This document shows positions 1,119-20,424 of a DNA stretch of 64,000 nt, one piece after another. Below the pieces are notes generated by a model that searched no databases, was not told where the DNA came from, and saw nothing but the letters and a program-made list of their open reading frames with translations. A program made the translations under genes and the position numbers. Each line of letters starts with the position of its first letter. The stretch's first letter is position 1. The stretch lies in the sequence record MH595538.1. One strand, 5' to 3'.

Positions 1119-2954
1119 ATGTATGATAATCTCATCACTCGCCTACTGCTTAAATCAGACGGCGGAGAAACATTGTTGCCTTGGTTATTAACTGCCGGTA
1201 ACACGATCACACAAGAGCGCATCTTGCCTTGGGATCAAACAAATGCTTATGCTGAAAATGAACTGGTTATTAACCCGTCTGACAATCACGTTTACCATGC
1301 TAATGCCGCTATCGTTGCCAATACCGCATGGAACGCTGCAGACTGGACACAGGTCGATACTCACGTAGGTTACGTTCAGCCTTATGATGAAAACCGTCAA
1401 TATGAACCTGATGATCTTGTTCACTTCAATGACAAACTGTTCGTAAGTAACAAAGCAACTACTGGCACGTTTGTTGTTGCGGACTGGGTTGAACTATCTA
1501 ATGACGGACAGATGCAAGACATCTTCGTTTACGATGACGACTCGGAAACAGGTACACGCAATGTTACCGACATCTATTTTGTAACTGCTGTTCCTGCTCC
1601 GTATGTACACATCCTTTACGATACAATCGTAGGTGTCGGTTCATCTTTAATGTCATCTATCGTGAAACTCAACAGTGTTTGGATTGATGCCGATGACAGC
1701 CCATTCCCATTCCGTGGTGTTGATATCCTAGGTCAAGCAAACCCTGGCGTCACACTACAGAATGTAAAAGACCGCATCGCGGATGACATCGCTCTAGCCA
1801 ACGGCAATACGCTATTCATAGTCATGGCAGGTACTAGTGACTGTAACACTTATCTAGCACCAGGCGGCATTGATGATAGCGACACAGGCGATATTCTGTC
1901 ATGGGAATCAATGACTACCGAACAGAAAACGACTGCTGAAGGTTTAATGCGTGACATCGTCACTGCGCTACAGCCTCATGGCGACGTAGCTATCGCATCA
2001 ATCCCTTATGTGGATCCACGTAGTGCTTTGTCCATTATGGCCGATAAAGGCCGTAACTTGCATGCAGGTTCATGGAATGACAATCTAGTTAGTCCGCTAT
2101 GTGAAGAACTAACACCTAACTGGTATGATGCAGGTAACGGAGCTCCCGTATTCGACTTCTACTCTGTAGGCTATGCAGACCCATCTATTCTAGATGACGA
2201 TAACCTGCACTACTATATGGATTACGATTACGACGCGACTGAGATCGGCTATGCCGATGGCGACGGTACGTTCTCAATGCGTGAATACATGATCAAGCGA
2301 CTTGCTGATATGGGTAACATTCCTGCTGCTCCGTTCGATACTGATAAGTATGAGAACCGTATCATTATCAACCTGGCTGATGATCCTACGTATACGCAGC
2401 GTCCAGCGATCCGTCGCAAGGCAAACAACATTGCTGTAGACAAAGACGCAGGCAACCAAGAAAACCTCACTGTGGGTTTCCTAGAAGGCGGTACGGTACC
2501 TGCTGGCTTAGCATTGGCTATCGAGTTCACTAGCCCTGGCGTTATTCGCCGAGGCATTACTGCCGATTCGATGCACTATGATGAAGGCATTCGTGATCCG
2601 AATATCCTAAATACCAGCATTAACATTATCAACAGTCGCACAATGACGATCAAGATTGCTAATGCAGGTAAAGGCCGTATTCAGATGGCTGGCCTATATC
2701 AGTCTACTGCTGAAAACGGAATGGAGACCGAAGTCACTTTCACTGATGACAATGGCGCTAAAACCATTACGTACAAGAACACACTAGACAACTCTGGCAG
2801 CTACACAGTAGAAGACTACTTTGGTGAAGCAGAGTATGACGTGCGTGTTGCTGGCGAGCTGGTATTGTCGTTTAACGGCATTGGCACCGATAATGCTTCT
2901 GACGACAGCAAATATTCTGGTGTTTCTGGCATCCTATTGGACATCGAAAAATAA
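1119..2954 (+). CDS. SGNH/GDSL-family hydrolase (esterase/deacetylase) with two N-terminal CBM5/12-like modules and a C-terminal beta domain; probable virion appendage
   Basis: SGNH blocks IVGVGSS (I), GQANPG (II), IVMAGTSD (III), DDDNLH (V); N-terminal repeats Y..D.V...LY.A.......W shared with the chitinase at 10541. Confidence 0.7.
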   Translation: MYDNLITRLLLKSDGGETLLPWLLTAGNTITQERILPWDQTNAYAENELVINPSDNHVYHANAAIVANTAWNAADWTQVDTHVGYVQPYDENRQYEPDDLVHFNDKLFVSNKATTGTFVVADWVELSNDGQMQDIFVYDDDSETGTRNVTDIYFVTAVPAPYVHILYDTIVGVGSSLMSSIVKLNSVWIDADDSPFPFRGVDILGQANPGVTLQNVKDRIADDIALANGNTLFIVMAGTSDCNTYLAPGGIDDSDTGDILSWESMTTEQKTTAEGLMRDIVTALQPHGDVAIASIPYVDPRSALSIMADKGRNLHAGSWNDNLVSPLCEELTPNWYDAGNGAPVFDFYSVGYADPSILDDDNLHYYMDYDYDATEIGYADGDGTFSMREYMIKRLADMGNIPAAPFDTDKYENRIIINLADDPTYTQRPAIRRKANNIAVDKDAGNQENLTVGFLEGGTVPAGLALAIEFTSPGVIRRGITADSMHYDEGIRDPNILNTSINIINSRTMTIKIANAGKGRIQMAGLYQSTAENGMETEVTFTDDNGAKTITYKNTLDNSGSYTVEDYFGEAEYDVRVAGELVLSFNGIGTDNASDDSKYSGVSGILLDIEK

Positions 2955-2958
2955 TACC

Positions 2959-2986
2959 TATACCTGGGGCAATTGCCCCAGGTATA
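2959..2986. terminator. Bidirectional terminator between convergent genes
   Basis: Perfect 28-nt palindrome TATACCTGGGGCAATTGCCCCAGGTATA. Confidence 0.75.
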
Positions 2987-2989
2987 TAT

Positions 2990-3724
2990 TTATGTTACTC
3001 TGACGATCAAGAAACCTTTCTCATCCACGATCATGTCAGTGCCCGGCAAGAACTCCTGGCTGGATGTAAAGACCAGTTCACCATTATCATTAACTGAAAA
3101 AGAAGAAGGACTATCTATCGGAACCGATAACTCTAGCTTACCTTCGGGACTAGATATTACATCAATTGAAAAGATAAGTTCATCAGGATTGATGTACTGA
3201 ATAACATCAGGAGATGACACATCTGCTCTTAGATTGTTATCATTAAGCTCGATAACTACAGCTTCTTCAATCTGTACATATTCTTGATCGCCATCAACTT
3301 GCTTATACCAGATCTCAGTAATTAAGTCACCAGTCTCTAGTTCAATCCAGTCATCCGCATTAAACTCCTGTACAGCCCCTGCGGCGGTTTTAACGTAAAT
3401 CTTATCCTCTTCTACCACCACATCTTCTTTTGCGTAACCACGGCTGAATACGGGCTTCGAAACAGTAGCATCAGGAACTGTGATTATTTCAGTATCGCTA
3501 GGTTGATGGACAACCGATATTGAACCGTCATCATCAAGATAAAGCGTTCCTGTTTTCACTCCTGTTGTAGAGTCTGATATCATCGGTACCAGTTCGCCAT
3601 GTTCTGTAAACATAGAACTGCGAATAGCAAGATAAGAGTCCTTGTCAATTAAGAACAAGTTAGTGGGGATTTTCGTTTCGCTAACCAGGGATATAATCCT
3701 GGCAAAAAAGGATGGCTTATCCAT
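2990..3724 (-). CDS. Hypothetical acidic beta-rich protein with C-terminal (D/N)xxGxL repeats; probable virion adaptor
   Basis: Start reassigned to 3724 (AGGAG RBS, MDKPSFF); C-terminus VNDNGELVF..IVDEKGFLIV resembles the C-terminus of 19930..20424. Confidence 0.7.
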   Translation of the reverse strand: MDKPSFFARIISLVSETKIPTNLFLIDKDSYLAIRSSMFTEHGELVPMISDSTTGVKTGTLYLDDDGSISVVHQPSDTEIITVPDATVSKPVFSRGYAKEDVVVEEDKIYVKTAAGAVQEFNADDWIELETGDLITEIWYKQVDGDQEYVQIEEAVVIELNDNNLRADVSSPDVIQYINPDELIFSIDVISSPEGKLELSVPIDSPSSFSVNDNGELVFTSSQEFLPGTDMIVDEKGFLIVRVT

Positions 3725-3828
3725 AGTTACTCCTAAGTACATCTTAACATAAGATTTCATCTAACTTAAATATGACAGGGATGATTCATGATGTAGGTAA
3801 AACTGCCATTGATCAAAAGAGAACGGAA

Positions 3829-4491
3829 ATGACAACCAAATTTATTGCCATCGAAGGCGTTGATTCAGTCGGTAAGGAAACCCAGACAAAACTACTCAAA
3901 GAGTGGCTTGGTACTTTCCTTGATTCTAAAAACATACATACTTATAGTTATCCTGATTATTCAAGTAAAACAGGCAAGCTAGTTAGATCTTATCTAAACG
4001 GTGAATTCGGAGATGCCGTTACAATGGATCCTCGTTTATCTGGGGCTCTATATTCCCTAGATCGTGTTAAAGCAAAAGGTGAATTTGATAACCTTATTGG
4101 CGCAGGCGATCAGGTCGTGCTACTGGATCGTTATGTCCACAGTAATTGTGCTCTGCAAGGCGCTAAAATAGAAGAAGCTGCAGAGCGTGAAGCGTTCTAT
4201 CGTCACTGTGAATCTCTGGAGTTCTTAGATCTAGGATTACCTCGTCCAGATATGATTATCTTCCTAGATGCCGACCCAGAAACCGCACAAGAACTCATGA
4301 AGAAGCGTACTGGCCAAGATAGAGATCAGCATGAGTCTAACTTGCCATTCTTAAAAGCAGCGCATCGCAATTACAAAGAGTTAGCCACTGATGATTCATG
4401 GGTAACGATTCCTTGTATAGCAGGCGGTGAAATGCGCTCTATTGAAGCAATCTCACTGAATATAAGAGCAGCTGTAAAACAACTATTCTAA
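3829..4491 (+). CDS. tmk: Thymidylate (dTMP) kinase
   Basis: P-loop IAIEGVDSVGKETQ, LLDRY motif, PDMIIFLD; start reassigned to MTTKFIAIEG. Confidence 0.92.
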   Translation: MTTKFIAIEGVDSVGKETQTKLLKEWLGTFLDSKNIHTYSYPDYSSKTGKLVRSYLNGEFGDAVTMDPRLSGALYSLDRVKAKGEFDNLIGAGDQVVLLDRYVHSNCALQGAKIEEAAEREAFYRHCESLEFLDLGLPRPDMIIFLDADPETAQELMKKRTGQDRDQHESNLPFLKAAHRNYKELATDDSWVTIPCIAGGEMRSIEAISLNIRAAVKQLF

Positions 4492-4567
4492 ATTAGTCTA
4501 TTGGATAGAAATAGGCAATAACCAATATTATACCTAGAGTAAAAATGTCATTAAGAGGAAAGATAAA

Positions 4568-5461
4568 ATGACGCAAACATTAGATGATATTCGAGTACTT
4601 AAACGCAATGGTAAATTGGAACCAGTAGACCTGGATAAGATTCACCGCGTATTACATTGGGCTGCTGAAGGCCTAGCCGGTATCTCAATATCCGACGTCG
4701 AATTAAAAGCTCACGTACAGTTCTTTGACGGCATCGAGACTAAAGACATCCATGATCTGTTAGTCAAAGCGGCAGCTGAGCTCATTACCGCAGAAGAACC
4801 AGACTATCAGTACTTCGCTGCACGCCTAAAGCTATTCTCATTGCGCAAAGAAGCATACGGTCAGTTTGAACCACCCAAACTGGTTGACCACATTAAAAAC
4901 ATGATTGACATTGGCAAGTATGACATGGAAATACTTGGCATGTATACGCCAGAAGATTTTGAATACTATGAAGGCATCATCAATCACTGGAATGACATGA
5001 ATTATGCTTACGCAGCCATGGAACAATTCTCTGGTAAATACTTAGTCAAGAACCGTGATACTGGCCGTATATATGAGACCCCTCAATTTATCAATATCAT
5101 GGCCCCTTTGACCATGTTTGGTAAATATCCAGAGCCTCAGCGTCGTGAACTTGTAACGGATTTCTATCAAGCTTTGGTTGACGGTAAGTTATCTCTACCA
5201 ACACCTATTATGTCAGGTGTGCGAACACCTACTCGCCAATTCAGCAGCTGTACTCTTATCGATTGTGATGATACTCTAGAGTCTATTATTGCGACCACTG
5301 GCGCTATTGTCCGCTATGCGGCTAAGCGAGCAGGCATTGGTATCAACGCAGGTCGTATTCGCGGTATTGGCTCTCCTATCCGTGATGGAGAAGCAGTATC
5401 GACAGGGGAAGTTGGTTTCCTTAAATTGTTTAACTCGGCAGTGGGATGCTGCTCACAGGGT
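4568..5461 (+). CDS. nrdA: Ribonucleotide reductase class Ia alpha subunit, exon 1 (with ATP cone)
   Basis: ATP cone VLKRNGKLEPVDLDKI; PTPIMSGVRTPTRQFSSC; ends CSQG at the U of the splice site. Confidence 0.95.
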
Positions 5462-5915
5462 GAATATTGCCCCGCATAGAGGTAACTCTATGTTGTAAAC
5501 TCCTTTAATTGCTGGGACTCCCTAAAGCTTGCTTGCCTCTTTGAGGAGCCGAAAGGCAGAAACAAGTAGCAAGATGGGCTAAGACGATAGTAAGTCTAAG
5601 GTCTTGATAATGGGACATCAGCCTTCGCATCAAGTAATGTGATTCAACGACTATCGAAAGCTTAACCTGAGAAGAAATATCTCGGGGGATGATAAGCTTA
5701 CCTGTGGGTAAGTGAAGCGAGTAGAGTACGGCCCAAGCGGGTGGGTTCCCAATCCCTTAAATGGAAACAAGGAGGGTCCTTGATTTGGTAACAGAATCAA
5801 GGATCGTGATATAGTCTCGTCAGTCAAACTTATCCCTTTCGGTTTGACATTCTATGGAAACATAGAGCTGCAGGTAATGCTGCGGACTGGTCTAGCGAAC
5901 CAGTTGAAGATTACG
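5462..5915 (+). mobile_element. Group I intron (IA-like, no ORF, 454 nt) in nrdA
   Basis: Removal restores CSQG|GVRKGSAT and a 762-aa NrdA; 5' exon ends in U, intron ends in G; P1 GGGU/GCCC with U.G pair; core elements AATTGCTGGGA (P), CAACGACTA (R), GATATAGTCT (S). Confidence 0.93.
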
Positions 5916-7310
5916 GGTGTAAGAAAGGGATCAGCAACTACCTTTTTCCCGATATGGCACATCGAAGCCCGTCAATTAATGGAACTTAAAAACAACCGTG
6001 GTGTTGAAGAAAACCGTGTTCGTACTATGGACTATGGTTTCCAGATTAACCGTTTCTTCTACGAGCGCCTACAGCGTGGTAAGACTATTCGTTTATTCTG
6101 TCCTTCAGAAGTTCCTGGGCTATACGAAGCATTCTTCCAAGATCAAGCTGAGTTTGCAAGACTGTATGAAAAGTATGAAAAGATGCCTCACTTGCGTCAT
6201 CATGATGTTGCCGCTAAAGATCTATTCGGTACATTGATGCAGGAGCGCGCTGGTACAGGCCGTATCTATATACAGCACGTCGACCATACAAACATGTACG
6301 GTAATTTCATTGAAGAAGAAGCGCCAACGTTCATGTCTAACCTGTGTGTAGAAATCACACTGCCTACTAAGCCACTCAAGTTTGATAACGACCCAGAAGG
6401 TGAAATTGCTCTATGTACTTTAGCGGCATTTAACCTTGGCGTGATTACACTCGAAGAGTTCCCTCGTTTGGCTGAACTGGTTGTGCGTTTCCTAGATGCG
6501 CTATTAGACTATCAAGATTATCCTTCTGAAGCAGCACGTAATTCATCGATGAAGCGCCGTACTTTAGGGGTTGGCATCATCAACTATGCATACTGGATCG
6601 CTAAGAATGGATTTAAGTATTCAGACGGCAGTGCAAACAACATGACTCACCTTTGGATTGAGAACATGCAGTACAGCCTAATGAAAGCATCAGTTCAGTT
6701 GGCAAAAGAGAAAGGTGCTTGTCCTGCGTTCAATCAAACTAAGATGGCCAAAGGTATTCTCCCGATTGATAATTACAAGCGTGAAGTCGATGAACTGCAT
6801 ACCCAAGAACTAACTTGCGATTGGGAAGGTCTGCGTGCCGATATCGCTAAGTATGGTATGCGTAACTCTACTATGTCTGCGTTCATGCCTTCTGAAACAT
6901 CATCTCAGATTGCTAATGCAACAAACGGCATTGAGCCACCTAACAAGCTTATGACTCGTAAGGCATCTAAAGACGGTATTCTTTCCCAGGTTGTACCTGA
7001 CGTCGAGAACTTACGTGACTCTTATGAGCTTCGTTGGAACATGCCAGACAACATTGGTTATATTCACCTAGTTGGCATTATGCAGAAGTTCGTATGTCAG
7101 GCAATATCTGCGAATACGAACTACGATCCTGCTAAGTTCCCAGGCGGAAAAGTGCCAATGAACGTTATGCTTAAAGAACTCATGACGTGTTATAAATATG
7201 GTGTTAAAACTCTGTACTATCATAACACGGAAGACGGTAGCAACGACCCAGTAGCTAACGCTATTGAGAAAGAAGACGAAAGCTGCGGCGGTGGTGGCTG
7301 TAAGATTTAA
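5916..7310 (+). CDS. nrdA: Ribonucleotide reductase class Ia alpha subunit, exon 2
   Basis: SNLCVEI (thiyl-radical Cys), LCTL, PSETSSQ, KTLYY, C-terminal CGGGGCKI redox tail. Confidence 0.95.
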   Translation, partial: GVRKGSATTFFPIWHIEARQLMELKNNRGVEENRVRTMDYGFQINRFFYERLQRGKTIRLFCPSEVPGLYEAFFQDQAEFARLYEKYEKMPHLRHHDVAAKDLFGTLMQERAGTGRIYIQHVDHTNMYGNFIEEEAPTFMSNLCVEITLPTKPLKFDNDPEGEIALCTLAAFNLGVITLEEFPRLAELVVRFLDALLDYQDYPSEAARNSSMKRRTLGVGIINYAYWIAKNGFKYSDGSANNMTHLWIENMQYSLMKASVQLAKEKGACPAFNQTKMAKGILPIDNYKREVDELHTQELTCDWEGLRADIAKYGMRNSTMSAFMPSETSSQIANATNGIEPPNKLMTRKASKDGILSQVVPDVENLRDSYELRWNMPDNIGYIHLVGIMQKFVCQAISANTNYDPAKFPGGKVPMNVMLKELMTCYKYGVKTLYYHNTEDGSNDPVANAIEKEDESCGGGGCKI

Positions 7311-7321
7311 TCCGGCACCAT

Positions 7322-7350
7322 AAGGGGAGGTGTGAATACTTCCCCTTTTT
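7322..7350 (+). terminator. Intrinsic terminator after nrdA
   Basis: AAGGGGAG...CTTCCCCTT hairpin plus T run. Confidence 0.7.
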
Positions 7351-7387
7351 TTAACTTATTAAAAATTGAATTTATCAGGAGACTAAA

Positions 7388-8092
7388 GTGTCTAAACAGG
7401 TTATCTTCAAAGCAGGTCCAACAAACTACCTTAATCAACCAATGTTCTTCGGCGACTCTGTATCAACCGCTCGCTATGATCAGCAGACATATCCGTTCTT
7501 TGAAAAGCTTATCGAAAAGCAGCTTTCATTCTTTTGGCGACCTGAAGAAGTAGATGTCTCTGCAGACCGTCGCGATTGGCAAGGACTCTCTAAAGCGGAG
7601 AAACATATCTTTATCTCTAATCTTCAGTATCAGACACTGCTAGATTCTATCCAAGGCCGTAGCCCCAATATCGCATTCTTGCCAATCACCTCAGTACCTG
7701 AAGTAGAGACATGGATTGAAACCTGGTCATTCTCAGAAACGATTCACTCTCGTTCGTACACGCATATTATGCGTAACATCCTCACAGGTGAAGAAATGGA
7801 CGAGGTGTTTAATGGCATTACTACCATTCCTGAAATCATTGCTCGCGCCGAGCGTTTTGGCCGTGCTTACGAAGAACTGATTGAATGCAACAATGCTCTG
7901 CTGCAGTCTAAAGTAGACGTACCTAACCGAGCTGAATTGGAGCGTGAACAAAAACGTAAGTTCCTGCGTGCCCTTGTAACAGTAAACGGTTTAGAAGCTT
8001 TAGCATTCTACGTATCATTTGCATGCTCATGGGCATTTGCCGAACGTTCTATCATGGAAGGTAACGCTAAGATCATTAGACTCATCGCCCGT
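7388..8092 (+). CDS. nrdB: Ribonucleotide reductase class Ia beta subunit, exon 1
   Basis: [45 protein letters not shown]. Confidence 0.95.
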
Positions 8093-9230
8093 TAATATGG
8101 CGGCTTCATGGAGTGATCCATGAATGCACACCTCGTGAAATCAGGGGACTCCGGTAACAGGAAATCCTGAGGTTGCTCTATATCAAATCACCTCCATATA
8201 AAACGTTTTGGTTTTATAGCGAGAGGTTTTATATGAAATGATTTGTTATGGTGAAATATGGATGGATCATAAAGAAAGACCTGATGATTATATTGTCAGT
8301 AATTTTGGCAGGGTCTTTTCCAGAAAAAGTTGTATGATGTTAAAGCAGTCACTAACCAAGGCAGGATATCTAACTTATGGGAGTAGGTTAGGATCGGTCC
8401 ATCGTTTGATTGTGACGCATTATTTAGGACCCATTCCCAAAGGAATGGTAGTTAATCATAAAAATGGAATTAAGACAGATAACTGGATTGATAACCTAGA
8501 GATAACTACTCATTCTGCTAATACCCAACATGCTTACGATACGGGTTTAGCCAAAGGGAAAAAGGGCGCTGCTAACTCACAGGCTAAAGTAACAGAAGAA
8601 ATCATTCTTGATATTTATAAGATGTTCGAAGCTGGCTTTAGTAACCAAGACATTAGTAAAAGATACGGACTGCATGACCGCTACGTATCTCTCATAAGAC
8701 ATGGAAAAAGATGGAAGTATCTGTATGTAAGATACGGTAAGACTTTCCCACGATCGTATGAATTTGTCTTTCGAAAAGAACAGATTCTTATGGCAAGGGA
8801 ACTATTACTCAAGGGCCATAACAATTTAACTATTGCAATGGCAACCGGAATAGAGAAGTCTAACATATCCAGATTCCGACATGGAAAAATGAATGCTTGG
8901 TGTGAGTGGATGGCAATATACGACAGAGCAACCGCAACGACTATCGAAAGCTTAACTTGAGAAGAAATCTCTCGAGGGATGATAAGCTTACCCGCGGGTA
9001 AGTGAAGCGAGTAGAGTACAGCCACAAGCTTATGGTGGTCCTGAAAGGGATAGCGGAGAAATCCGTAATGGAAGCGCGAGGGGTCTCTTATCTGGTAACA
9101 GGGTAAGAGATCATGATATAGTCTGGCCCGGCCTTAACGGCCTATCTGTGAATACACAGGTATCCTAGGTAATGCTAGGAGCAGTATATGAAACTATACG
9201 GGTGTGTTTTGCGAACACACTGAACATACG
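8093..9230 (+). mobile_element. Group I intron (1138 nt) in nrdB carrying a homing endonuclease
   Basis: Removal restores IAR|DETLHL and a 374-aa NrdB; exon ends in U, intron ends in G; P1 CCGU/GCGG; R (CAACGACTA) and S (GATATAGTCT) elements. Confidence 0.93.
8238..8960 (+). CDS. Intron-encoded HNH homing endonuclease (NUMOD4-HNH plus C-terminal HTH-like DNA-binding region)
   Basis: YIVSNFGRV (NUMOD4), VHRLIVTHY, VNHKNGIKTDNWIDNLE (HNH), HSANTQHA. Confidence 0.9.
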   Translation: MICYGEIWMDHKERPDDYIVSNFGRVFSRKSCMMLKQSLTKAGYLTYGSRLGSVHRLIVTHYLGPIPKGMVVNHKNGIKTDNWIDNLEITTHSANTQHAYDTGLAKGKKGAANSQAKVTEEIILDIYKMFEAGFSNQDISKRYGLHDRYVSLIRHGKRWKYLYVRYGKTFPRSYEFVFRKEQILMARELLLKGHNNLTIAMATGIEKSNISRFRHGKMNAWCEWMAIYDRATATTIESLT

Positions 9231-9650
9231 GATGAAACTTTACATTTAGCCGGCACACAGTACATGATCAATGAACTGGCTAAAGGCGCTCAAGGAGCTG
9301 AATGGAAAGAGCTCTTTGAAGAAATGCGTGATGAGCTAGGTGAGATCATGCTAGCTATTGCCATGCAGGAAAAAGAGTGGGGTCGCTACCTGTTTAAAGA
9401 CGGTACGATGATCGGCCTTAACTCAAACATTATAGACCAGCTTATCGAGTACTTCTGTAATATCCGTTGTGCGGCTATTAAACTAGATAAGCCTTTTGCA
9501 GAACAGAAAAAGAATCCAATTGGATGGTTTAACTCTTGGATTCAATCCGCCGGTGTTCAAGTAGCACCGCAAGAAACAGAGCAGTCTTCTTACCTTGTCG
9601 GTCAAGTAGATTCTACTATTGATGAAGACGCTCTAGACATGGATCTTTAA
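9231..9650 (+). CDS. nrdB: Ribonucleotide reductase class Ia beta subunit, exon 2
   Basis: DETLH iron ligands, EKEWGRYLF, VAPQETEQSSYLVGQ with the conserved Tyr. Confidence 0.95.
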   Translation, partial: DETLHLAGTQYMINELAKGAQGAEWKELFEEMRDELGEIMLAIAMQEKEWGRYLFKDGTMIGLNSNIIDQLIEYFCNIRCAAIKLDKPFAEQKKNPIGWFNSWIQSAGVQVAPQETEQSSYLVGQVDSTIDEDALDMDL

Positions 9651-10540: not shown

Positions 10541-12265
10541 ATGTCACTTATTCGCTTAGTTAAGCTAGTAGACGGCGTTGCAACAGGACTGGGCACTGTC
10601 ATTAGAACACAAGACAGTCCATATCCTGTACAAGCTAGTTATAACGAATTTAGACCCACAGAGAACTATCTTAAAGATCATGTCACTTTCTATAACGGAG
10701 AGTTATATCAGGCCAAGGCAGACATTGCCGCTGGTCAATGGAATATCGATCACTGGACAGCGGTCAACGAGTACGTAGGTTATATACAGGAATATCAAGC
10801 AGGAGAAACTTACAATCTTGATGAGTTTGTTATCCATAATGATCGTCTTTACAAAACCAAAGAGGATGGAATTACAGGCACATGGGATGTAAGTCGATGG
10901 GAAGAACTAACGGCTAATACGACTGTCGAAACCATCAATGCCTACTTAATCGACAACCACCAATTAAATAAACCTTTATCTAGTGCGGTACTAAAAGGGA
11001 ATGTAAGAAAGCTGTACTTAGCAGACGGTTCTATTCCTGGAGAAACTAGTGGAGTAACGGCTAAAATAAAAACACTTATTGGCTATTACCCTACATGGCG
11101 TACAGAGTTCTTTGGCTCAGGTAATACCGACCTAACGATTCGTAAGCCGTCTAATAGTCCTAGTGCTTTTAGCCACGTTAAACTATCCTTTGCTCACACT
11201 AAGCCTGTGTTTGATCCTACTAGTCCCGATTTGACCGGGATTGGTTTTAATACTCAATCTGGATTAGAAGCTGCCTTTAAAGAAGACATCGGTAAACTAA
11301 GAGCTCGTGGTACAAAAGTCTATCTGTCTGTAGGAGGAGCCACTTACGGAAGACCTGACGTTGCTGATGCGTGGACTGGACTTATTGATGAATCCGACAT
11401 TATTGATGCTGGCAGCAATGACTATCCTGCACAGACTCCTTACACTAAAGCTTTAGTTGATGTGATCGAGTACTTAGACTTGGATGGGATTGATCTGGAC
11501 TTTGAAGATGATATGGCCTGGCATACTAACGTTCGAACAACATGGCTAGACAATCAATATAAGCTACTGCGTCTATTTAGGTTCATCGCTGATACAGCAG
11601 GCACTGCTTTAGGAAGACCTATTGCGACAGCTACTGCATGTTGGTCAACCGGATGGGATAGCAGCGCAGGGAGCGTTGCAGACATTGCTACTCCAGACTA
11701 CGATGGAAACAAGGTTTCTTACTTTGGAGGATCGGCTGGTCGAGACAGAAGTCTGTACGGAGGTTACACATCCGTAGACTTAGGTGGCGTGATGAACGCA
11801 TCCAGCTTTGTTGATGTCTTTGTCAATATGACCTATGATGCAATATTTTCAGATTTTGCAGGTAATGAAGATCCTGCTGGGCCTTTCGATTCTAACTACG
11901 ATCCCGTTAAAGCTTATGAGCAGTGCCGCAGCATCATTACCGATCCAAATAAAATCTGTACCATAGGGGTTACTAACAATCCAGGGTTTGGAGATCATGA
12001 ACTTATGGTCTACAGTAACCAGTGTGCTCCCTCAGGGCCTCATCCTACGGTTTTAGACAAGGATCAATACGGTAACGTCATTGACGCTCCTTTCTCTGTT
12101 CAGAGAGTCACTGAGGCGATTGAAGCAAATCTCACCCAGTATCCTAATGACGGAATTATTCAATGGTCGATTTATGCGATTGATCCGACAACGTCATATG
12201 TCCATGAGGGGAATGCCGAAGCATCCTGGAAAGACATCGTGGATTATGTAGCAACTAAAATGTAA
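10541..12265 (+). CDS. GH18 chitinase with two N-terminal CBM5/12-like modules
   Basis: Intact DGIDLDFE (DxxDxDxE), LSVGG (SxGG), NMTYD and GIIQWSI motifs; ATG at 10541 after an AGGAG RBS. Confidence 0.88.
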   Translation: MSLIRLVKLVDGVATGLGTVIRTQDSPYPVQASYNEFRPTENYLKDHVTFYNGELYQAKADIAAGQWNIDHWTAVNEYVGYIQEYQAGETYNLDEFVIHNDRLYKTKEDGITGTWDVSRWEELTANTTVETINAYLIDNHQLNKPLSSAVLKGNVRKLYLADGSIPGETSGVTAKIKTLIGYYPTWRTEFFGSGNTDLTIRKPSNSPSAFSHVKLSFAHTKPVFDPTSPDLTGIGFNTQSGLEAAFKEDIGKLRARGTKVYLSVGGATYGRPDVADAWTGLIDESDIIDAGSNDYPAQTPYTKALVDVIEYLDLDGIDLDFEDDMAWHTNVRTTWLDNQYKLLRLFRFIADTAGTALGRPIATATACWSTGWDSSAGSVADIATPDYDGNKVSYFGGSAGRDRSLYGGYTSVDLGGVMNASSFVDVFVNMTYDAIFSDFAGNEDPAGPFDSNYDPVKAYEQCRSIITDPNKICTIGVTNNPGFGDHELMVYSNQCAPSGPHPTVLDKDQYGNVIDAPFSVQRVTEAIEANLTQYPNDGIIQWSIYAIDPTTSYVHEGNAEASWKDIVDYVATKM

Positions 12266-12335: not shown

Positions 12336-12364
12336 TACATCACTTTAAAAACGAGGAAAGGCTA

Positions 12365-13020: not shown

Positions 13021-13026
13021 TAGTAT

Positions 13027-13148: not shown

Positions 13149-13167
13149 AAATGACATTTTTCATTAT

Positions 13168-13199
13168 TTGAGTCCTCCTTCGGGAGGGCTCAATTTTTT
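13168..13199 (+). terminator. Intrinsic terminator
   Basis: TTGAGTCCTCC-TTCG-GGAGGGCTCAA plus T run. Confidence 0.8.
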
Positions 13200-13217
13200 A
13201 TGTTTTAAGGAAAAGAT

Positions 13218-13673: not shown

Positions 13674-14138
13674 ATGTGGGAAGAACTACATAGATTTAGT
13701 CCATTAGAAGGACTATTGATAGCCAATGTTATTGCGATGACGCTGACCTTAACTATTGCTCATTTAAAGAAACGACATGGCAAAGACCATAAGTTCCTTC
13801 GGATGCAGTCAATCATTAACGAGGAGCTACCTAAAGAGGCTGAACACCTCCATAACAACGGTCTTAACTTTAACGATGCATGTTGCCTCTCCAGAATCAA
13901 GGTGATCAATTCGGTCTGGGCTGCTTATTGTGATTCATATACTTGTACGGAATACTTGCTTGAAGATCTCGCTAAGGAAGCCTATGATCTGCGCAGACTT
14001 TATGATAACGCACGAAAGGCCGGCAATCAAGATTTCTATTGCAAAGCAGTAATCGAGGCAGTAGATTTTTCAAGAGCAGCGTGTTATTACGCAGAAGAAA
14101 TCCACGGTATACATAAGGAGTCATTAGGATGGCTATAA
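13674..14138 (+). CDS. Membrane-anchored helical protein
   Basis: N-terminal TM (GLLIANVIAMTLTLTIAHL) then KKRHGK; abuts the upstream stop. Confidence 0.7.
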   Translation: MWEELHRFSPLEGLLIANVIAMTLTLTIAHLKKRHGKDHKFLRMQSIINEELPKEAEHLHNNGLNFNDACCLSRIKVINSVWAAYCDSYTCTEYLLEDLAKEAYDLRRLYDNARKAGNQDFYCKAVIEAVDFSRAACYYAEEIHGIHKESLGWL

Positions 14139-14476
14139 CACTTTCATTATTAGACTTTTCCGTACTTGTATTTTTCAATCTAATACTTACGCTGAAGGTC
14201 ATTGGAGACTGGAGAACGAAACGACGCGGCAGTAAATTATGGACAGGGCTTACTTCTCACCTGCAATATGTACGTAACCAGATTCACATTACGTACTTAT
14301 TGAAAATGCCAGTGCATGAGCGTAATCGACATTTGGCTCAAAACATCCGTAAAGTCATCGAGCTAAACACCGTTACTAAAGACCCTTTGTTTAATGTTTT
14401 CGTAGCTAAAGAACTGGCTTACGCAAACAGACTAGAACGCACACTTGATGATCCGTATGGACCAGAGAAATTATAG
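14129..14476 (+). CDS. Small membrane-anchored protein
   Basis: N-terminal TM then RTKRRG; overlaps the previous ORF. Confidence 0.7.
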   Translation: MAITLSLLDFSVLVFFNLILTLKVIGDWRTKRRGSKLWTGLTSHLQYVRNQIHITYLLKMPVHERNRHLAQNIRKVIELNTVTKDPLFNVFVAKELAYANRLERTLDDPYGPEKL

Positions 14477-14485
14477 GAGACTACC

Positions 14486-15073
14486 ATGGGTTCTTTTGCA
14501 GGAATTGCATTTAACTTTAAACTTAAGCCTTGGGATAAACTCAATCCTAAAATGACCGCAGTCGCGGCCTTTATGTCGCACTGTAATGACGGCGTGCCAA
14601 CGAAACCATTCAAGGCAATGCTGGAGTCTCATAAACTCGATGCCAGAATGTTTAATGGCTTCTCAGGCGATCATCTATTTAACTGGGATGCGACAGGCCA
14701 TATGGTTAAAGACGACGAAGATGCCATTACGATATGCAGCGTGGTCTCTTGTCGGTCAGGATATGTTGGTCAATGGCAGAAGTTCTTAGATGAATGCAGC
14801 TGGAGCAGTCAATTTGAATTGCCTGATGAGCCAACGGTAATCATGGTAGCCATTCATGAAACACCTACGTCCCATGCTTACACTAGGCTGACTCTATTGC
14901 CGTGCGGTTTTATAACAACCGAGACACATCCTTTGTCTGCAGAACTTGCAACCAGAGCGATCTGTCCAAGCGAACCATTTAAACCACTAAGGGTTAGTGA
15001 GCTATGGGTCCCGTCCATGCTGACTGTTCCTCGCAAAGAAACACTGGTCAGTAAATCTTGCCAGCTTTCTTAA
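14486..15073 (+). CDS. Hypothetical protein
   Basis: AGGAG RBS, 195 aa, in operon. Confidence 0.75.
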   Translation: MGSFAGIAFNFKLKPWDKLNPKMTAVAAFMSHCNDGVPTKPFKAMLESHKLDARMFNGFSGDHLFNWDATGHMVKDDEDAITICSVVSCRSGYVGQWQKFLDECSWSSQFELPDEPTVIMVAIHETPTSHAYTRLTLLPCGFITTETHPLSAELATRAICPSEPFKPLRVSELWVPSMLTVPRKETLVSKSCQLS

Positions 15074-15120
15074 TGCGTAATTTTACAAAGCATAAACTTT
15101 AACAACAGAGAGTAACAATC

Positions 15121-15462
15121 ATGAAAAAAGAAGTTCTAGATCTACTAGCAAAAGAAGGCGACGTTCTTAAATTCAAAATCCTGGGCTTTCCAGCACAGGG
15201 TAAGATGCGTATCAGTCTTGCGGCCAATAATAGCCTGGGTGCTGAAGACGTGACCGTTGCTCGTCCTAGCGATTTAAACGAAGCGAAGGTTGGCCAGATG
15301 GTTAAGATCATCGATGCCTATGGTGATGCGACCTACGTAACACTAGCCGACAAGAAAACTGCTAAGCCTGCAAAACCTGAAAGAACAGATTCTCGTAAAA
15401 ACGAACGCACTCCTAACTTTAAGCAGGTATCCGGTGTAGCTCGTGAAAAGCGTGAATGGTAA
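15121..15462 (+). CDS. Hypothetical basic protein
   Basis: GAG RBS, 113 aa, followed by palindrome at 15473-15497. Confidence 0.75.
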   Translation: MKKEVLDLLAKEGDVLKFKILGFPAQGKMRISLAANNSLGAEDVTVARPSDLNEAKVGQMVKIIDAYGDATYVTLADKKTAKPAKPERTDSRKNERTPNFKQVSGVAREKREW

Positions 15463-15525
15463 ACTGAACTTATAGAGACTGGCATTGCCAGTCTCTAATC
15501 AATATTTTATTTAAAGGATGATAGT

Positions 15526-16140
15526 ATGACTACAATCGTACTGGCTAGAGGAAACCTTGCATCAGATCGCATGTGCGTTGAATATACGAACCACTTCATG
15601 CATCTACGCAAGAAATCAGCGGTTGGAACAAATGGCACTGTGGGTATCGCTATTGGCGGTAAGGCACGCACTAATGAAATACTAGTTAAATTAGCTGACA
15701 TGTGTGAAGCCTTAGACTGGATTGATATTCATATCGAAGAAAATGAAGAAAAGTATAAATATCTTCGCGACGACGCACTGGCACTTTCTAAATCACTCGC
15801 TGAGTTACTAGATGAAGATTCACTCTTCGTTGTATATCGAAGTCGCGGTAAGGTCAAGATGTGTTATGCCGAAGGACATGTCGGTAATTCGGGAGATCTA
15901 GATCTAAAGTCATTGTTCGATGATTCATATCAGACATATGGGACCGGTGCAGCTATGGCGGAGTTTGAAATACGCCATCAGTACAGTAAAGGCATTGAAG
16001 ACTATGCTGTGCTGTTTGAAGTAGTAAGCTCTATTGAAGAATGCACCAGCAAAGAACACGATGTCATTTATGGCGAAGATCTTAAGGACATTGCCGAAGT
16101 TAAAGAAGTGGATATCAAGATCAAGGAGCTGTTGAAATGA
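15526..16140 (+). CDS. N-terminal-threonine (Ntn) protease, HslV/proteasome-beta-like
   Basis: Starts MTTIV; LASDR (Asp17 equivalent), RKK (Lys33 equivalent), AIGG, YGTGAAMA (GSG-equivalent loop), ECTS. Confidence 0.72.
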   Translation: MTTIVLARGNLASDRMCVEYTNHFMHLRKKSAVGTNGTVGIAIGGKARTNEILVKLADMCEALDWIDIHIEENEEKYKYLRDDALALSKSLAELLDEDSLFVVYRSRGKVKMCYAEGHVGNSGDLDLKSLFDDSYQTYGTGAAMAEFEIRHQYSKGIEDYAVLFEVVSSIEECTSKEHDVIYGEDLKDIAEVKEVDIKIKELLK

Positions 16141-16688
16141 ACAAACCGATTATCTTAAACGGCGATTACATTACGTATCCTACATCGACACTAGCGTATG
16201 GCAATACCGCTATACATGATGGTTACTGTCGAATGACGGAATACGGGATGTTGTTTGCAGATAGCGCAGCAGATCTTACCTACTTTAATGTCCTGCGTAA
16301 AGGTTATCCTATTGAAAACTATTTGACTCTAGCAGGACAGTATGATAAGCGCCGCTTTATACTGATCAATGATCAAGGAGACATCATTGTCCGTACGTTG
16401 ACTACCGGACCTAAGAAAAATAGTTTCAATGAAATAGTCAATGTACACTGCTCTGATATGAAGATGAAGATTGGCTTTTCTGAAAATGCACGCACCGTAG
16501 ATTTTATCTTAACTGGCCTGCATAAAGGAATGGACGGCCCTGAAATCGTAGATTTCCTCAAAGAGCATTCATGTATCGCTACTGACTTTAAAACCGAAAA
16601 GGTCAGTGCTATTGTCAAAAGACTCAAAAAGAAAAAGCTGGGTAACAAACATTTACCTGGCGCTAAATCACTTTTCTCTAATGAATAA
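16137..16688 (+). CDS. Partner of the Ntn protease; possible inactive Ntn-fold subunit
   Basis: ATGA overlap with the upstream gene; strand/helix order resembles Ntn fold but N-terminal Thr and GSG are absent. Confidence 0.5.
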   Translation: MNKPIILNGDYITYPTSTLAYGNTAIHDGYCRMTEYGMLFADSAADLTYFNVLRKGYPIENYLTLAGQYDKRRFILINDQGDIIVRTLTTGPKKNSFNEIVNVHCSDMKMKIGFSENARTVDFILTGLHKGMDGPEIVDFLKEHSCIATDFKTEKVSAIVKRLKKKKLGNKHLPGAKSLFSNE

Positions 16689-16715
16689 CTTCCGCATAAT
16701 TTAAGGAGACGGAAA

Positions 16716-17633
16716 ATGTCAAACACTAAAGAATCTATCATCACTTACAAAACTGGTCCAGCTACAGGTACTTTTGTTCTACTGAACAACTCATTTGCCT
16801 TTCAGGTATTCGCCGCCTTCTGTGAAGAATGGACGGATGCCGACACAGGCATTGCGGCCATCCCAAAAGGCAATATCCATAAAGTCACACGGGATGATAA
16901 ACAGGGGCCGCTGACTGTCAATGACCTTAAAAATCCTAATGGGATCGACTCCTGTGTCTATATCAAGCCAACTCGTCGTGCTGATGGATCGCACTCCCTT
17001 GAAGTACAATTGCCAAATAGCGATAAAGGAATCATAGGCGGTAGTACTTGCTGTCGTGAAAATAACTGGGTTGGTTTCATATCTGTGACTTATGAAGCAG
17101 AATGGTCCAAGCATCGTGCCTTGTACAGTGCTGCTGATCAATGGGTTCTTAGTAATGCTCGTCGACATAAATTGACAGCGCCTAAGTCAAAAGCGATCTA
17201 TATGCGAAAGATCACGAATCCGGCACTGGCGCTACTGACGGCAGCTAAAGATAATCCTGTGTTCGTTACTGGCGATGGCCGTAACTACCAGGCATATACT
17301 TCGGAAAACGTCGCTATGTTGGCTAACGTCCAAGGCATCACTACTAGCAAGCTAGACTATTATAGTATCAGCTATTACGATAAAGGTATGTCGTATACTG
17401 GTGAGCAGCTTGCTCTTGTCAAAGCCATTGCTGATAAACCTCGTTTTGTAGAGTTGGCTGCTTTCACTCCTTATCAGGATAAGTTAGGCCATCCTAACTA
17501 TACTCTGATGCTGCCTAATGCAGAAAGCATTAAAGTAGAGGCGCACAGTGATGTAAGAATGGTCTATGCGACTAAGGAAGGCAAGCTACTTTACGTTGAT
17601 GTCCCAGCTGGCAATCTGTCTTTAATTAAATAA
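16716..17633 (+). CDS. Hypothetical protein (305 aa)
   Basis: AAGGAG RBS, long ORF. Confidence 0.8.
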   Translation: MSNTKESIITYKTGPATGTFVLLNNSFAFQVFAAFCEEWTDADTGIAAIPKGNIHKVTRDDKQGPLTVNDLKNPNGIDSCVYIKPTRRADGSHSLEVQLPNSDKGIIGGSTCCRENNWVGFISVTYEAEWSKHRALYSAADQWVLSNARRHKLTAPKSKAIYMRKITNPALALLTAAKDNPVFVTGDGRNYQAYTSENVAMLANVQGITTSKLDYYSISYYDKGMSYTGEQLALVKAIADKPRFVELAAFTPYQDKLGHPNYTLMLPNAESIKVEAHSDVRMVYATKEGKLLYVDVPAGNLSLIK

Positions 17634-17638
17634 AATAT

Positions 17639-17662
17639 AAAGGAGGGCAAATGCCCTCCTTT
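17639..17662. terminator. Bidirectional terminator
   Basis: AAAGGAGGGCA-AA-TGCCCTCCTTT between convergent genes. Confidence 0.75.
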
Positions 17663-17684
17663 ACTTATTTACTTTTTTATTTTG

Positions 17685-19919
17685 TTAAGTAAGTACAGTA
17701 ACGCCTAGAGCCGCTGTATCGATGTCTGCGTTATCGGAACGTGAAAGCGCAGTATGTCCCTTAGCATAGTTACTATGGCACATATGACTCAATATACGAG
17801 CTCCTGAAGGCACATAAATAGGTCGCCCTGACGTAGTACCGGTATGATCCCATATGTCATTGCCTTTAACCTTCAAGGTACCATTCTCACCTGGTTGTCC
17901 TTCTGCAATGGACGGGTTACCACAGGTTACTGAAATGTGGTTAGAGCCATCATCGCCATTTGGATAAGCCAGTTCGTTATCCGCAACAACTACATGCATT
18001 GCAAAGCCCATATCATCACGGCCTACAACGATGCCTGCCTGGTTTAAGTTAGGTAAGATGTTGTTTCTTACTTCCACTCGCTCAATAGGCCAGCTGTCAG
18101 TAGGCAAAGTCAAACTAACGCCCTTAGTGCACTTGTTGGCGTAGTTATTCTTGATATGTAGCTCAGGAGAGCCGATAGTAGAGTCTGGATCTACTTCATG
18201 CGTCCAATCGATGAAGGTACCTTCATAATCTAAGACCTTATTATCTTCGATGAAGACCGCACTATCACCATGGATGTTACAGTTGTTACGCATCCAGTGA
18301 TCGCCGCCTTTGAAAGTATTGTTCTTGATTACACAGGTCCTAACGATGCTTGCGCGTTGCTTAACAGAGTTCTCACCAGTATATGTATGCGAGAAGAAGC
18401 GAATTGCTTCAGCAGGGTAACTGGCAGGCTGTCCTTCAGCAGCTGAGTTATGTGCTTCATAGTAATTGTCATACATGAACAGATCACCAGGAATCGGATT
18501 AGAGTCCATGTCATTGAGATCCATGCCTCGGTTCTGCAAGAACAAGAATCGTTCACGACCGCCTAAGATAATGTTACCATAGATCTTGATCACTCCATAT
18601 TTAGTAATCGTAGGATAGGTATCGGTAGTACCATCCGTGTTTGACGATAACATGAACGAGATGCCTACATCTCTGATAACATTACCAGCGATAATCATTT
18701 CTTTACCGCCTTGCACCTGGAATGCTTCGCCTTCTTCATAACCAAGGACGATGTTATTGGCAATGATTGCACCCCACGCATCCTCACCCATTCGAGAAGC
18801 TGTTTTAATAGCTGCGCCGTTAGAATCGATAAAGACATTATCTGTCCAGATTTGACGGTTAGTACCACCAGGCGTCATCGTATTCTGATAACAGTACCGG
18901 AAGTAACAGGCGGTCACGCGCACGTCAAATGAAGAAACCGCATCAGGAACTGTAGCGCTATCATAACCGCCTGAGTGAGCACGCAGTCCGGCATCCCCGA
19001 ATGACTCTAGGAAACAGCCATCAGCCACAGGACTCGTACAGGCACGGAAGTAAAGGCCCTGCTCACCCCAGTTATTATTCTTACTGGTTCCGTTAAGTCC
19101 TTTAAGACCAGTGTTCGATAACATCGGAGACACACAGCTATCAAAGCGCACTAGATATTCGCCGCTCCACAATAGGGTGTCTTTAAACAAACGACCATAG
19201 GCCATGCGGAAGTTAGACTTGTTTTCAATTAAGAAGGTAGACTTGCATGCATAGTCGCCATCGATGAATACGGTTGAGCCATCAGGCATAAACTTATTGA
19301 TGCGAATACAAGCATCCTCTACTGACTGAGGATCACCCATTTTAGCGCCAAAGTCAGATAGCTTCACTACGAGGCCATATTCTACATCCATATCCAGAGG
19401 CTTAGACGGCAAGAAGTCATTGGCTGTTAATTCAGCTATTGTTGGACGTTCGGTTTCACCTGCCCATGAGAAACTGACTACTAATGTCTCTGATTCGTCA
19501 ATGACAGTAACCGGAGCCATAACGCCAGATGCGTTAATTGTGATTCCGTTATGGATTGCAGGATCTATTGTAACATCTGTCTGCAAGAAGGTTTTGATCT
19601 CAAGTAGCGCACTGCTATCATAAAAGAGTGCCCGGAAACGAGGAATGGTCAGTACGCCTGTCGATGAGTTATATGACAGATTACCGCCTAGTCTGGAAAT
19701 ACCTTTACTGGAAATCGCCGGTACTGCTTTTGTATCCGATACGGTTTTCACCCAGTACTCAGGGTCCGTGGGAGCTGTACCTAAAGGTACATCTTTTAAT
19801 GCACGATATACGCCGTCGCCGGACACTCGTACTTCGTCAAGGAAACTGTAGACCTCGCTAATGTCATATTCTTCCCTGAACTTACCAAAAACCCTGGCCA
19901 GCTTTTTTGTTTGTGCCAT
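17685..19919 (-). CDS. Tailspike/depolymerase with right-handed parallel beta-helix and an N-terminal CBM5/12-like module
   Basis: VKLSDFGAKMGD..V.DA (pectate-lyase-3-type entry motif); repeated II.NN/I.GN beta-helix rungs; N-terminal Y...DEV..GDGVYRALKD..DPEYW. Confidence 0.8.
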   Translation of the reverse strand: MAQTKKLARVFGKFREEYDISEVYSFLDEVRVSGDGVYRALKDVPLGTAPTDPEYWVKTVSDTKAVPAISSKGISRLGGNLSYNSSTGVLTIPRFRALFYDSSALLEIKTFLQTDVTIDPAIHNGITINASGVMAPVTVIDESETLVVSFSWAGETERPTIAELTANDFLPSKPLDMDVEYGLVVKLSDFGAKMGDPQSVEDACIRINKFMPDGSTVFIDGDYACKSTFLIENKSNFRMAYGRLFKDTLLWSGEYLVRFDSCVSPMLSNTGLKGLNGTSKNNNWGEQGLYFRACTSPVADGCFLESFGDAGLRAHSGGYDSATVPDAVSSFDVRVTACYFRYCYQNTMTPGGTNRQIWTDNVFIDSNGAAIKTASRMGEDAWGAIIANNIVLGYEEGEAFQVQGGKEMIIAGNVIRDVGISFMLSSNTDGTTDTYPTITKYGVIKIYGNIILGGRERFLFLQNRGMDLNDMDSNPIPGDLFMYDNYYEAHNSAAEGQPASYPAEAIRFFSHTYTGENSVKQRASIVRTCVIKNNTFKGGDHWMRNNCNIHGDSAVFIEDNKVLDYEGTFIDWTHEVDPDSTIGSPELHIKNNYANKCTKGVSLTLPTDSWPIERVEVRNNILPNLNQAGIVVGRDDMGFAMHVVVADNELAYPNGDDGSNHISVTCGNPSIAEGQPGENGTLKVKGNDIWDHTGTTSGRPIYVPSGARILSHMCHSNYAKGHTALSRSDNADIDTAALGVTVLT

Positions 19920-19929
19920 GTTAGTGTCC

Positions 19930-20424
19930 TTATAAAACTAAAGTCAAGTAGCCGTCTTCATCGACTATATATTTATCAATGTCTTCACCAGACGTGGTTA
20001 ATTCTAAATAGCCATCATCAGATACTTCGAGAATCCATAAACCTGTTTGAGGATCATAGAAATTCTCCCAGTAAGTGGGATCGGTTAATGCGGCATTAGA
20101 TGCACCAGGGACATCGCTCTTAGCGCGATAGAATCCTGATGCAAGGAATATTTCATCGCCCTTCTGATAGTCTTGTGTTGGATCATGAGACTTATAATAG
20201 GTTGCATCAGACACTGGACCGCCAGGACTGTTGCCGCCTGTCCATAACTGCTTCCAGTATTCTGTATCCGAAAGACTGACGTTACTATTTTCAGGTACGT
20301 CTTTGATGCAGCTATAAATCCCGTTACCGTCGATAAAGACCATGTCTATTTCTGTGTATGCCGCATTGACATCATGCGTGGTCAGTACATCACCTCTGAC
20401 ACGAGCCAAAATTTTATCTATCAT
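19930..20424 (-). CDS. Non-catalytic adaptor: two CBM5/12-like modules plus C-terminal DDGYL repeats
   Basis: Repeats IYSCIKDVP...DTEYW and FYRAKSDVP...DPTYW; VSDDGYL and IVDEDGYL. Confidence 0.72.
   Translation of the reverse strand: MIDKILARVRGDVLTTHDVNAAYTEIDMVFIDGNGIYSCIKDVPENSNVSLSDTEYWKQLWTGGNSPGGPVSDATYYKSHDPTQDYQKGDEIFLASGFYRAKSDVPGASNAALTDPTYWENFYDPQTGLWILEVSDDGYLELTTSGEDIDKYIVDEDGYLTLVL

Follow-up and report, generated by a model that had tools for sequence, protein, structure and literature searches.

In the final 64 kb of the genome of Vibrio phage BONAISHI, four genes that GenBank labels 'hypothetical protein' (ORF229, ORF238, ORF249c and ORF250c) encode a shared unit, namely a short arm at the N-terminus with one or two small CBM5/12-fold modules behind it. 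BONAISHI is a phiKZ-like jumbo phage whose host is Vibrio coralliilyticus (PMC6207643), and the whole stretch analysed here (the window) runs from position 224968 to the end of the 288,967-bp record MH595538.1; its first 22 kb are 100% identical to positions 224968-246967 of that record. We propose, with a probability of about 0.68, that arm and module together form a virion docking or fibre unit, which holds interchangeable receptor-binding enzymes directed at host polysaccharides. This reading is favoured because the nearest solved relatives of the module, in sequence as well as in fold, are the virion-proximal N-termini of tail fibres and tailspikes. The four genes, in window coordinates, are:

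1119-2954, plus strand: ORF229, 611 amino acids (aa); N-terminal arm, two type-A modules, putative SGNH-type esterase domain, C-terminal jelly-roll
10541-12265, plus strand: ORF238, 574 aa; N-terminal arm, two type-A modules, GH18 catalytic domain
17685-19919, minus strand: ORF249c, 744 aa; type-B arm, one module, right-handed beta-helix related to a polysaccharide lyase
19930-20424, minus strand: ORF250c, 164 aa; type-B arm, two modules, tail of ~40 aa

The module family and its nearest solved relatives

The module is ~45-50 aa long, and the window copies in the four proteins fall into two subgroups, A (ORF229 and ORF238) and B (ORF249c and ORF250c). One further gene of the window carries a diverged copy, detected with the hidden Markov model (HMM) of group A.

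1221-1499, plus strand: ORF229 tandem module, residues 35-79 and 80-127, type A
10631-10912, plus strand: ORF238 tandem module, residues 31-75 and 76-124, type A
19740-19901, minus strand: ORF249c module, residues 7-60, type B
20242-20409 and 20056-20211, minus strand: ORF250c modules, residues 6-61 and 72-123, type B
2990-3724, minus strand: ORF230c, 244 aa, adjoining ORF229, with one diverged module
3335-3448, minus strand: the ORF230c module, residues ~93-130 (group-A HMM, E 2.4e-6 in the window)

For each protein, an HMM was built from its modules and searched against a six-frame database of the window. Matches within subgroups had E-values of 1e-5 to 1e-13 overall (ORF229 to ORF238, 1.6e-7; ORF250c to ORF249c, 5.5e-10; ORF249c to ORF250c, 7e-13). 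Direct HMM searches between A and B gave weak matches (E 0.03-0.1), and a profile-profile comparison with hhalign, in which the profiles were enriched with relatives to 14 type-A and 7 type-B modules, gave a probability of 93.8% and a P-value of 1.8e-7 over 43 columns. Because of the within-subgroup E-values and this P-value, we conclude from the sequences that the seven modules are one homologous family and not a chance resemblance. A MAFFT alignment of the three tandems was out of register, and single-module alignments were used instead; two columns are invariant across the seven modules.

A preliminary description of this DNA had reported seven modules in the four genes, close alignment of the ORF229 and ORF238 tandems, and no signal peptides. 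The seven copies are real and lie where it placed them, and the close alignment of the two tandems holds. A crude hydropathy scan of the window proteins found neither a signal peptide nor a transmembrane segment. The count itself was too low, as the eighth copy in ORF230c and a genome-wide total of about 39 demonstrate.

We searched all PDB sequences with a profile of the seven modules. The top match was the N-terminus of the long tail fibre gp015 of phage 7-7-1 (1.8e-10, two stretches). Further matches were the Milano tailspike gp124 (2e-8, two stretches), residues 47-90 of a 1289-aa long-tail-fibre proximal subunit (3.8e-6), the F2 pyocin fibre (8.6e-6) and residues 48-91 of the proximal fibre of Klebsiella phage KP1 (8e-4); T4 gp34 is likewise 1289 aa long (PMC5537660). 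The true chitinase binding domains 2rts and 1ed7 were matched marginally, with E-values of 0.021 and 0.082. Residues 38-133 of ORF229 alone recovered 7-7-1 gp015 (9rkv_M, 5.5e-7) and Milano gp124 (8fqc_P1, 3.3e-4), and the ORF238 family profile independently matched the same Milano/7-7-1 region (3e-4). The type-B modules alone matched only the F2 pyocin fibre (3.1e-5).

The structural model points to the same relatives. In an AlphaFold2 (AF2) monomer model of ORF238 residues 1-135 (predicted local distance difference test, pLDDT, 84.4; predicted TM-score, pTM, 0.68), a beta-hairpin arm (residues 3-22) is followed by two small beta modules. Its top five Foldseek matches are all chains of 9rkv and 8fqc (3.6e-7 to 1.7e-5; best 8fqc match, 1e-6), and the next match is the tandem CBM12 of a Vibrio chitin oligosaccharide deacetylase (2e-4). 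Single modules of 41-47 residues superpose on the binding domains of ChiB (1ogg), ChiC (2d49/1wvv) and ChiA1 (1ed7) with a root-mean-square deviation (rmsd) of 1.3-1.9 A in Foldseek. In this model, the module has the CBM5/12 fold.

At the level of Pfam, CBM_5_12 (PF02839, gathering score 26.2 bits) remains below threshold in ORF229 (12.8 bits) and ORF238 (21.0 bits) and does not match ORF249c or ORF250c. The match is solid only at the family level, because ORF141, a further module protein of this genome, scores 94.5 bits summed over its repeats and because PF02839 is present in 76 of 79 distant relatives (79 of the best profile matches). Therefore, the earlier assignment of the pattern to CBM5/12 stands for the fold and the family, and the PF02839 search that had been suggested as a check succeeds for ORF141 and the relatives and stays under the gathering score for the four window proteins. 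The Pfam and chitinase-domain matches end at about model position 30 of 44, covering about the first two thirds. The module is probably a distant relative of the CBM5/12 family.

The same 79 relatives belong to PHROG families phrog_9851 (41 proteins), phrog_5073 (32) and phrog_972 (15), all of them tail-fibre families, and a PHROG and Pfam scan of these relatives detected no glycosidase family. Moreover, phrog_972 matches ORF229 itself (5e-4). Fibres that bear the module come from phages and tailocins of Agrobacterium, E. coli, Klebsiella, Pseudomonas and cyanobacteria. Against 1.84 billion representatives, the seven-module profile matched 2253 clusters (E<=1e-3; 421 of them at E<=1e-10), many with 5-24 repeats. 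In the viral structure library BFVD, the module fold was found in ORF169, ORF141 and ORF168c of BONAISHI, in entries that match Yong XC31 proteins in length, and in many fibrous proteins of uncultured phages that are automatically named CBM5/12, ChiC_BD, ChiA1-BD or collagen-like. In phages, the CBM5/12 fold is a standard block of fibres and of virion-proximal ends.

The role of the matched region is known for the two closest relatives. Residues 1-175 of Milano gp124 form a module, N-terminal and tail-binding, in which a 25-residue arm touches sheath and wedge proteins and the globular domains sit as a wedge between BW2 and BW3, with contacts via loops 55-60 and 100-115; the fold was likened to that of the N-terminal domains of CBA120 TSP1 and TSP3 (PMC10811340). 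In the 7-7-1 fibre, residues 1-120 anchor the protein to the baseplate core (PMC12796354). As in both anchors, the BONAISHI modules are N-terminal, stand behind a short arm and are followed by a distal enzyme or receptor part. The two Milano contact loops align to a variable stretch of the BONAISHI modules, from the conserved Tyr-x-Ala to the final Trp.

Module carriers across the genome

The rest of the BONAISHI genome was retrieved and all six frames were scanned with the module HMMs. The whole genome encodes about 39 copies in 14 proteins, ~31 of which lie outside the window in nine further genes: ORF141 (17 copies), ORF142, ORF160, ORF162, ORF164, ORF165, ORF168c (2), ORF169 (2) and ORF192c (3). 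Two of these carriers, in genome coordinates, are:

145070-148201: ORF141, 1043 aa, about 17 tandem modules
180839-181306: ORF169, 155 aa, arm and two modules, adjoining ORF168c

ORF141 is matched by the HMMs of both subgroups and thus bridges A and B. It also matches phrog_972, the T4 gp34 type (4e-18), and is probably a long fibre.

The N-terminal arms are of two kinds, one in ORF229, ORF168c, ORF238 and ORF169, and the other in ORF249c, ORF250c and ORF192c. Over the arm and first module, ORF192c and ORF249c are 41% identical, and the remainder of the two proteins is unrelated; a PDB search found no solved relative of ORF192c. The two arm-and-module types suggest two kinds of docking site. 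ORF160, ORF162, ORF164 and ORF165 (genome 169856-175835) have N-termini of ~75 residues that resemble one another, each followed by one module, and these N-termini may represent a separate anchor class. Ten other genes around ORF143-166, scanned against PHROG, received no structural assignment.

Distal parts of the module proteins

The preliminary description had labelled the four proteins as an SGNH hydrolase (ORF229), a GH18 chitinase (ORF238), a beta-helix tailspike (ORF249c) and an empty adaptor (ORF250c). The SGNH and GH18 assignments agree with the catalytic motifs, together with a weak fold match for the former and with PF00704 in relatives of the latter. The beta-helix is recovered by a direct match to a solved lyase, and the adaptor label is consistent with the lack of a detected catalytic domain. 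PHROG and Pfam searches with the four window proteins alone gave few matches, and word-based homolog searches recovered 5, 7 and 1 proteins. The domains behind the modules are:

1611-2318, plus strand: ORF229 putative SGNH esterase domain, about residues 165-400 (motifs, weak fold match)
2346-2951, plus strand: ORF229 C-terminal beta-sandwich, candidate glycan-binding domain, about residues 410-611 (Foldseek, tentative)
11066-12175, plus strand: ORF238 GH18 domain, about residues 176-545 (motifs and PF00704)
18462-19355, minus strand: ORF249c beta-helix domain, residues 189-486, related to V. cholerae RbmB

In the ORF238 family alignment, the GH18 motifs are invariant, including DGIDLDFE from D315 to E322 (invariant residues D315, G316, D318, D320, F321 and E322), G265/G266 of SxGG and M430/Y432/D433 of MxYD. 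All six relatives carry PF00704, which scores 23.2 bits on ORF238 alone (gathering score 29.6). Several GH18 chitinases are matched by the ORF238 family profile (best 3ebv, 2.4e-8). These results support the presence of an intact GH18 domain in ORF238. Relatives from other jumbo Vibrio phages retain the module tandem, whereas the bacterial GH18 relative P0012 has a hydrophobic leader and ChiA N-terminal domains where the module would be.

The SGNH blocks of ORF229 are likewise invariant in its family alignment, namely Ser176 (block I), G238/D241/N243 (block III) and D361-x-x-H364 (block V). At residue ~240, ORF229 has Ser in place of the Asn of the block III GxND motif, and Asn is kept in ORF168c and four other relatives; this substitution may alter the activity. 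Lipase_GDSL_2 is weakly matched by three of six ORF229 relatives (best E 0.012). The best Foldseek match of the full-length model (pLDDT 49) is the two-domain acetyl-mannan SGNH esterase 6hh9 (1.2e-5), which gives weak support. The C-terminus (model pLDDT 52-85) matches jelly rolls of CBM6, CBM32, CBM35 and CBM61 in Foldseek. In PDB searches, ORF250c and the ORF229 C-terminus also matched antibody V-domains, which was dismissed as motif-level noise.

Elsewhere in the genome, ORF168c is a full-length paralog of ORF229 (45% identity). The C-terminal two thirds of ORF229 recur in the V. coralliilyticus phages YC, RYC, GR28A and GR11A and in V. cholerae phage Kuja. Among relatives of the enzyme parts of the module proteins, the annotations read tail fibre or tail collar fibre. 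N-termini are swapped among relatives of this enzyme: in Kuja_1840 and P0005, the P2-type tail-fibre N-terminus PF12571 replaces the module.

Residues 189-486 of ORF249c match 9ozd_A, a 'Polysaccharide lyase' (4.3e-12, phmmer). This entry is V. cholerae RbmB, a lyase that cleaves Vibrio polysaccharide (VPS) (PMC12993940). At an assumed offset of 28, the proposed RbmB catalytic residues Lys227 and Glu253 would correspond in ORF249c to Ala (with a Lys two positions upstream) and Gln, in a register that is uncertain at 20-25% identity. The vps and rbm clusters are present in V. coralliilyticus, and RbmB has been reported as related to Vibrio phage tail proteins. The Ackermannviridae phages YC (gp103) and GR28A, both of V. 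coralliilyticus, encode full-length homologs of ORF249c. In phage YC, gp103 and the ORF229 homolog gp108 lie within 4 kb of each other, with the large proteins gp102 and gp096 nearby, and the region looks like a tailspike cluster; only gp103 bears the module.

No catalytic domain was detected in ORF250c by Pfam, PHROG, PDB or homolog searches, and the word-based homolog index held no near relative comparable in length. In phage Yong XC31, a conserved counterpart of ORF250c (184 aa) is clustered with a 652-aa type-B protein, and a 243-aa counterpart of ORF230c lies directly upstream of the ORF250c-like gene. The 243-aa BFVD entry A0A6B7EU81, whose identity with that 243-aa Yong protein is only assumed, matches the arm-plus-modules model with TMq 0.64. 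An arm is present in both ORF250c and ORF169. Each of the small carriers with no detected catalytic domain adjoins a module enzyme (ORF250c-ORF249c, ORF230c-ORF229 and ORF169-ORF168c); they may serve as adaptors, caps or assembly factors. A C-terminal tail common to ORF250c, ORF230c and ORF169 was seen by eye and rejected as not significant (best E 0.09).

A proposed docking unit for host-recognition enzymes

We propose that the short N-terminal arm and its one or two CBM5/12-fold modules would serve as the virion-proximal attachment and trimerisation part of a fibre or tailspike, which would dock the distal parts onto the BONAISHI baseplate or fibre network. These distal parts would be the SGNH esterase and jelly-roll of ORF229, the GH18 glycosidase of ORF238 and the RbmB-like lyase of ORF249c, while ORF250c would be an anchor only. 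The 17-fold repeated module would build the shaft of the ORF141 fibre. We infer that the proteins are present in the virion, form trimers and contact BONAISHI baseplate proteins, and that their substrates are polysaccharides of the host surface or biofilm (for example acetylated, GlcNAc-containing Vibrio polysaccharide, capsule or lipopolysaccharide) rather than chitin.

The closest known parallel is the anchor of Milano gp124 and 7-7-1 gp015 (8fqc, 9rkv), in which, as in BONAISHI, two ~45-aa modules follow a ~25-residue arm and precede a distal part. The Milano/7-7-1 unit has been seen in situ on baseplate wedge proteins. Identity between them is just 21-25%, the orientation of the modules differs (tandem rmsd 14-21 A), and the disulfide cross-links of the Milano arm have no BONAISHI counterpart. 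Unlike the Milano and 7-7-1 unit, that of BONAISHI is found on at least seven N-termini and in two types.

Similar arrangements have been described in other phages. In the Ackermannviridae phage CBA120, different enzymatic tailspikes (TSP1-4) are held on one tail by their N-terminal domains, as we propose for BONAISHI, and the virion-binding subdomain D2 of TSP1 folds like the chitin-binding domain of ChiA1 (1ED7, rmsd 2.1 A) (PMC3966878). Both ORF229 and ORF249c have homologs in an Ackermannviridae Vibrio phage. However, the BONAISHI searches yielded no direct sequence match to CBA120 proteins, and the CBA120 anchors include T4 gp10-like domains, none of which was detected in the window. The T4-type gp34 (phrog_972; 9x3r, 9f4a) has one module copy at residues ~47-90 of its phage-proximal end; unlike the BONAISHI enzymes, it is a long structural fibre without an enzyme, carries a single copy and attaches through gp9. 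Within BONAISHI's own phage lineage, the paralogous N-termini of phiKZ gp131, 133, 134 and 135 follow the same logic, plugging varied C-terminal domains into the baseplate periphery (PMC13250141).

The preliminary description had also compared the module to a cellulosome tag. A shared docking tag is favoured by the evidence, but the cellulosome, in which one scaffold holds several enzymes on a repeated tag, is an analogy only. The cohesin-dockerin system has another fold and is extracellular and bacterial, with calcium-dependent docking; homology to it was rejected, as the Pfam searches returned no dockerin or cohesin similarity.

Several observations weigh against the docking proposal. The four genes are surrounded by nucleotide-metabolism genes and lie outside the recognised structural clusters. 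The BONAISHI paper reports neither virion proteomics nor a structure (PMC6207643). Our models are of monomers only, and that of full-length ORF229 is poor. The superposed modules share 21-28% identity with chitinase binding domains, and their fold is truly that of CBM5/12, so that they might still bind glycans. Moreover, the peripheral anchor of phiKZ is a six-helix bundle, unrelated to the BONAISHI beta module (PMC13250141).

The fold raises the question of whether the modules are working CBM5/12 domains that hold the enzymes or the virion on the chitin or GlcNAc-rich matrix of a chitin-colonising host, as the preliminary description had suggested in proposing that the virion binds and digests chitin. 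The family-level PF02839 match, the close superposition on ChiB, ChiC and ChiA1, the resemblance of the tandem to the deacetylase CBM12 and the intact GH18 of one carrier are all in keeping with such a role, and many phage proteins of this fold are automatically named CBM5/12 or ChiC_BD. The small beta fold and the tandem arrangement are indeed common to our module and the CBM5/12 of chitinases and the Vibrio deacetylase. However, the nearest solved relatives are baseplate-proximal fibre ends, with the chitinase domains marginal (E 0.02-0.08), and the Pfam and PDB matches span only about two thirds of the CBM5/12 model. The secreted-enzyme context expected of CBM5/12 is absent from the window proteins in the hydropathy scan, and in contrast to the chitinase domains, their module is N-terminal behind a conserved arm, where tailspikes bear the particle-binding part. 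The module is also found on the RbmB-like lyase, on SGNH esterases, 17 times in the fibre-like ORF141, and in phage and tailocin fibres from hosts without a chitin ecology. In relatives, PF12571 substitutes for it, and according to the CBA120 authors, no head-binding domain has ever been reported to bind polysaccharide (PMC3966878). We therefore consider a chitin-binding function unlikely.

Another possibility is that the proteins are no virion parts but soluble enzymes, produced in the infected cell and liberated when it lyses, which might for instance clear matrix for the progeny, and that the module only trimerises them. Their location amid nucleotide-metabolism and unknown genes would fit this idea, as would the use of the module as a repeated structural bead; the failure to find a signal peptide and the absence of proteomics from the BONAISHI paper (PMC6207643) leave room for it. 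It is at odds with the direct similarity of the modules to anchors seen in situ on the baseplate. In addition, relatives of the enzyme parts are carried on classical tail-fibre N-termini and annotated accordingly, and two types of conserved N-terminal arm make sense for docking sites. This possibility, too, appears improbable.

A dual role, in which exposed copies such as the 17 of ORF141 and the second modules of the tandems keep a weak affinity for chitin or GlcNAc polymers, is doubtful. If it were true, the virion would stick to chitin particles or coral mucus where the chitin-colonising Vibrio host settles, a fibre-borne parallel to the capsid-borne Ig-like domains proposed for phage-mucus adherence. 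Finally, convergence of a short aromatic motif in beta-rich proteins that share neither origin nor function has next to no chance of being correct: the modules are short, share two invariant columns and are weakly linked between A and B in direct HMM searches, and the spurious antibody V-domain matches illustrate how easily the motif is matched, but the within-subgroup E-values (1e-7 to 1e-13), the between-subgroup hhalign P-value, the bridging by ORF141, the 2253 matched clusters and the confident common fold all contradict it.

Other features of the window were recorded alongside. The ribonucleotide reductase genes are split within 4568-9650, with alpha open reading frames at 4568-5479 and 5877-7310 and beta open reading frames at 7388-8095 and 9264-9650, and an HNH endonuclease gene (8238-8960) lies between the latter two. 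This arrangement suggests the insertion of homing elements or introns. Scans of the whole window (1-64000) found neither tRNA genes nor, at gathering score, any Rfam family, intron families included. In the BLAST table of the BONAISHI paper, ORF229 is the only one of the four module proteins to appear, with a match to Vibrio phage RYC (PMC6207643).

Taken together, the anchor principle is already known from Milano, 7-7-1, CBA120 and T4, and the general advance is therefore small; the BONAISHI set is a further case. The docking reading would suggest what at least 14 'hypothetical' proteins do in a phage proposed for coral-pathogen control, and it outlines a host-recognition apparatus in which several enzymes would share two anchor types, with host biofilm polysaccharide as the likely target of ORF249c. 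More broadly, automatic 'CBM5/12' or 'chitin-binding' labels on phage proteins usually denote a fibre or anchor module and are not evidence of chitin handling.

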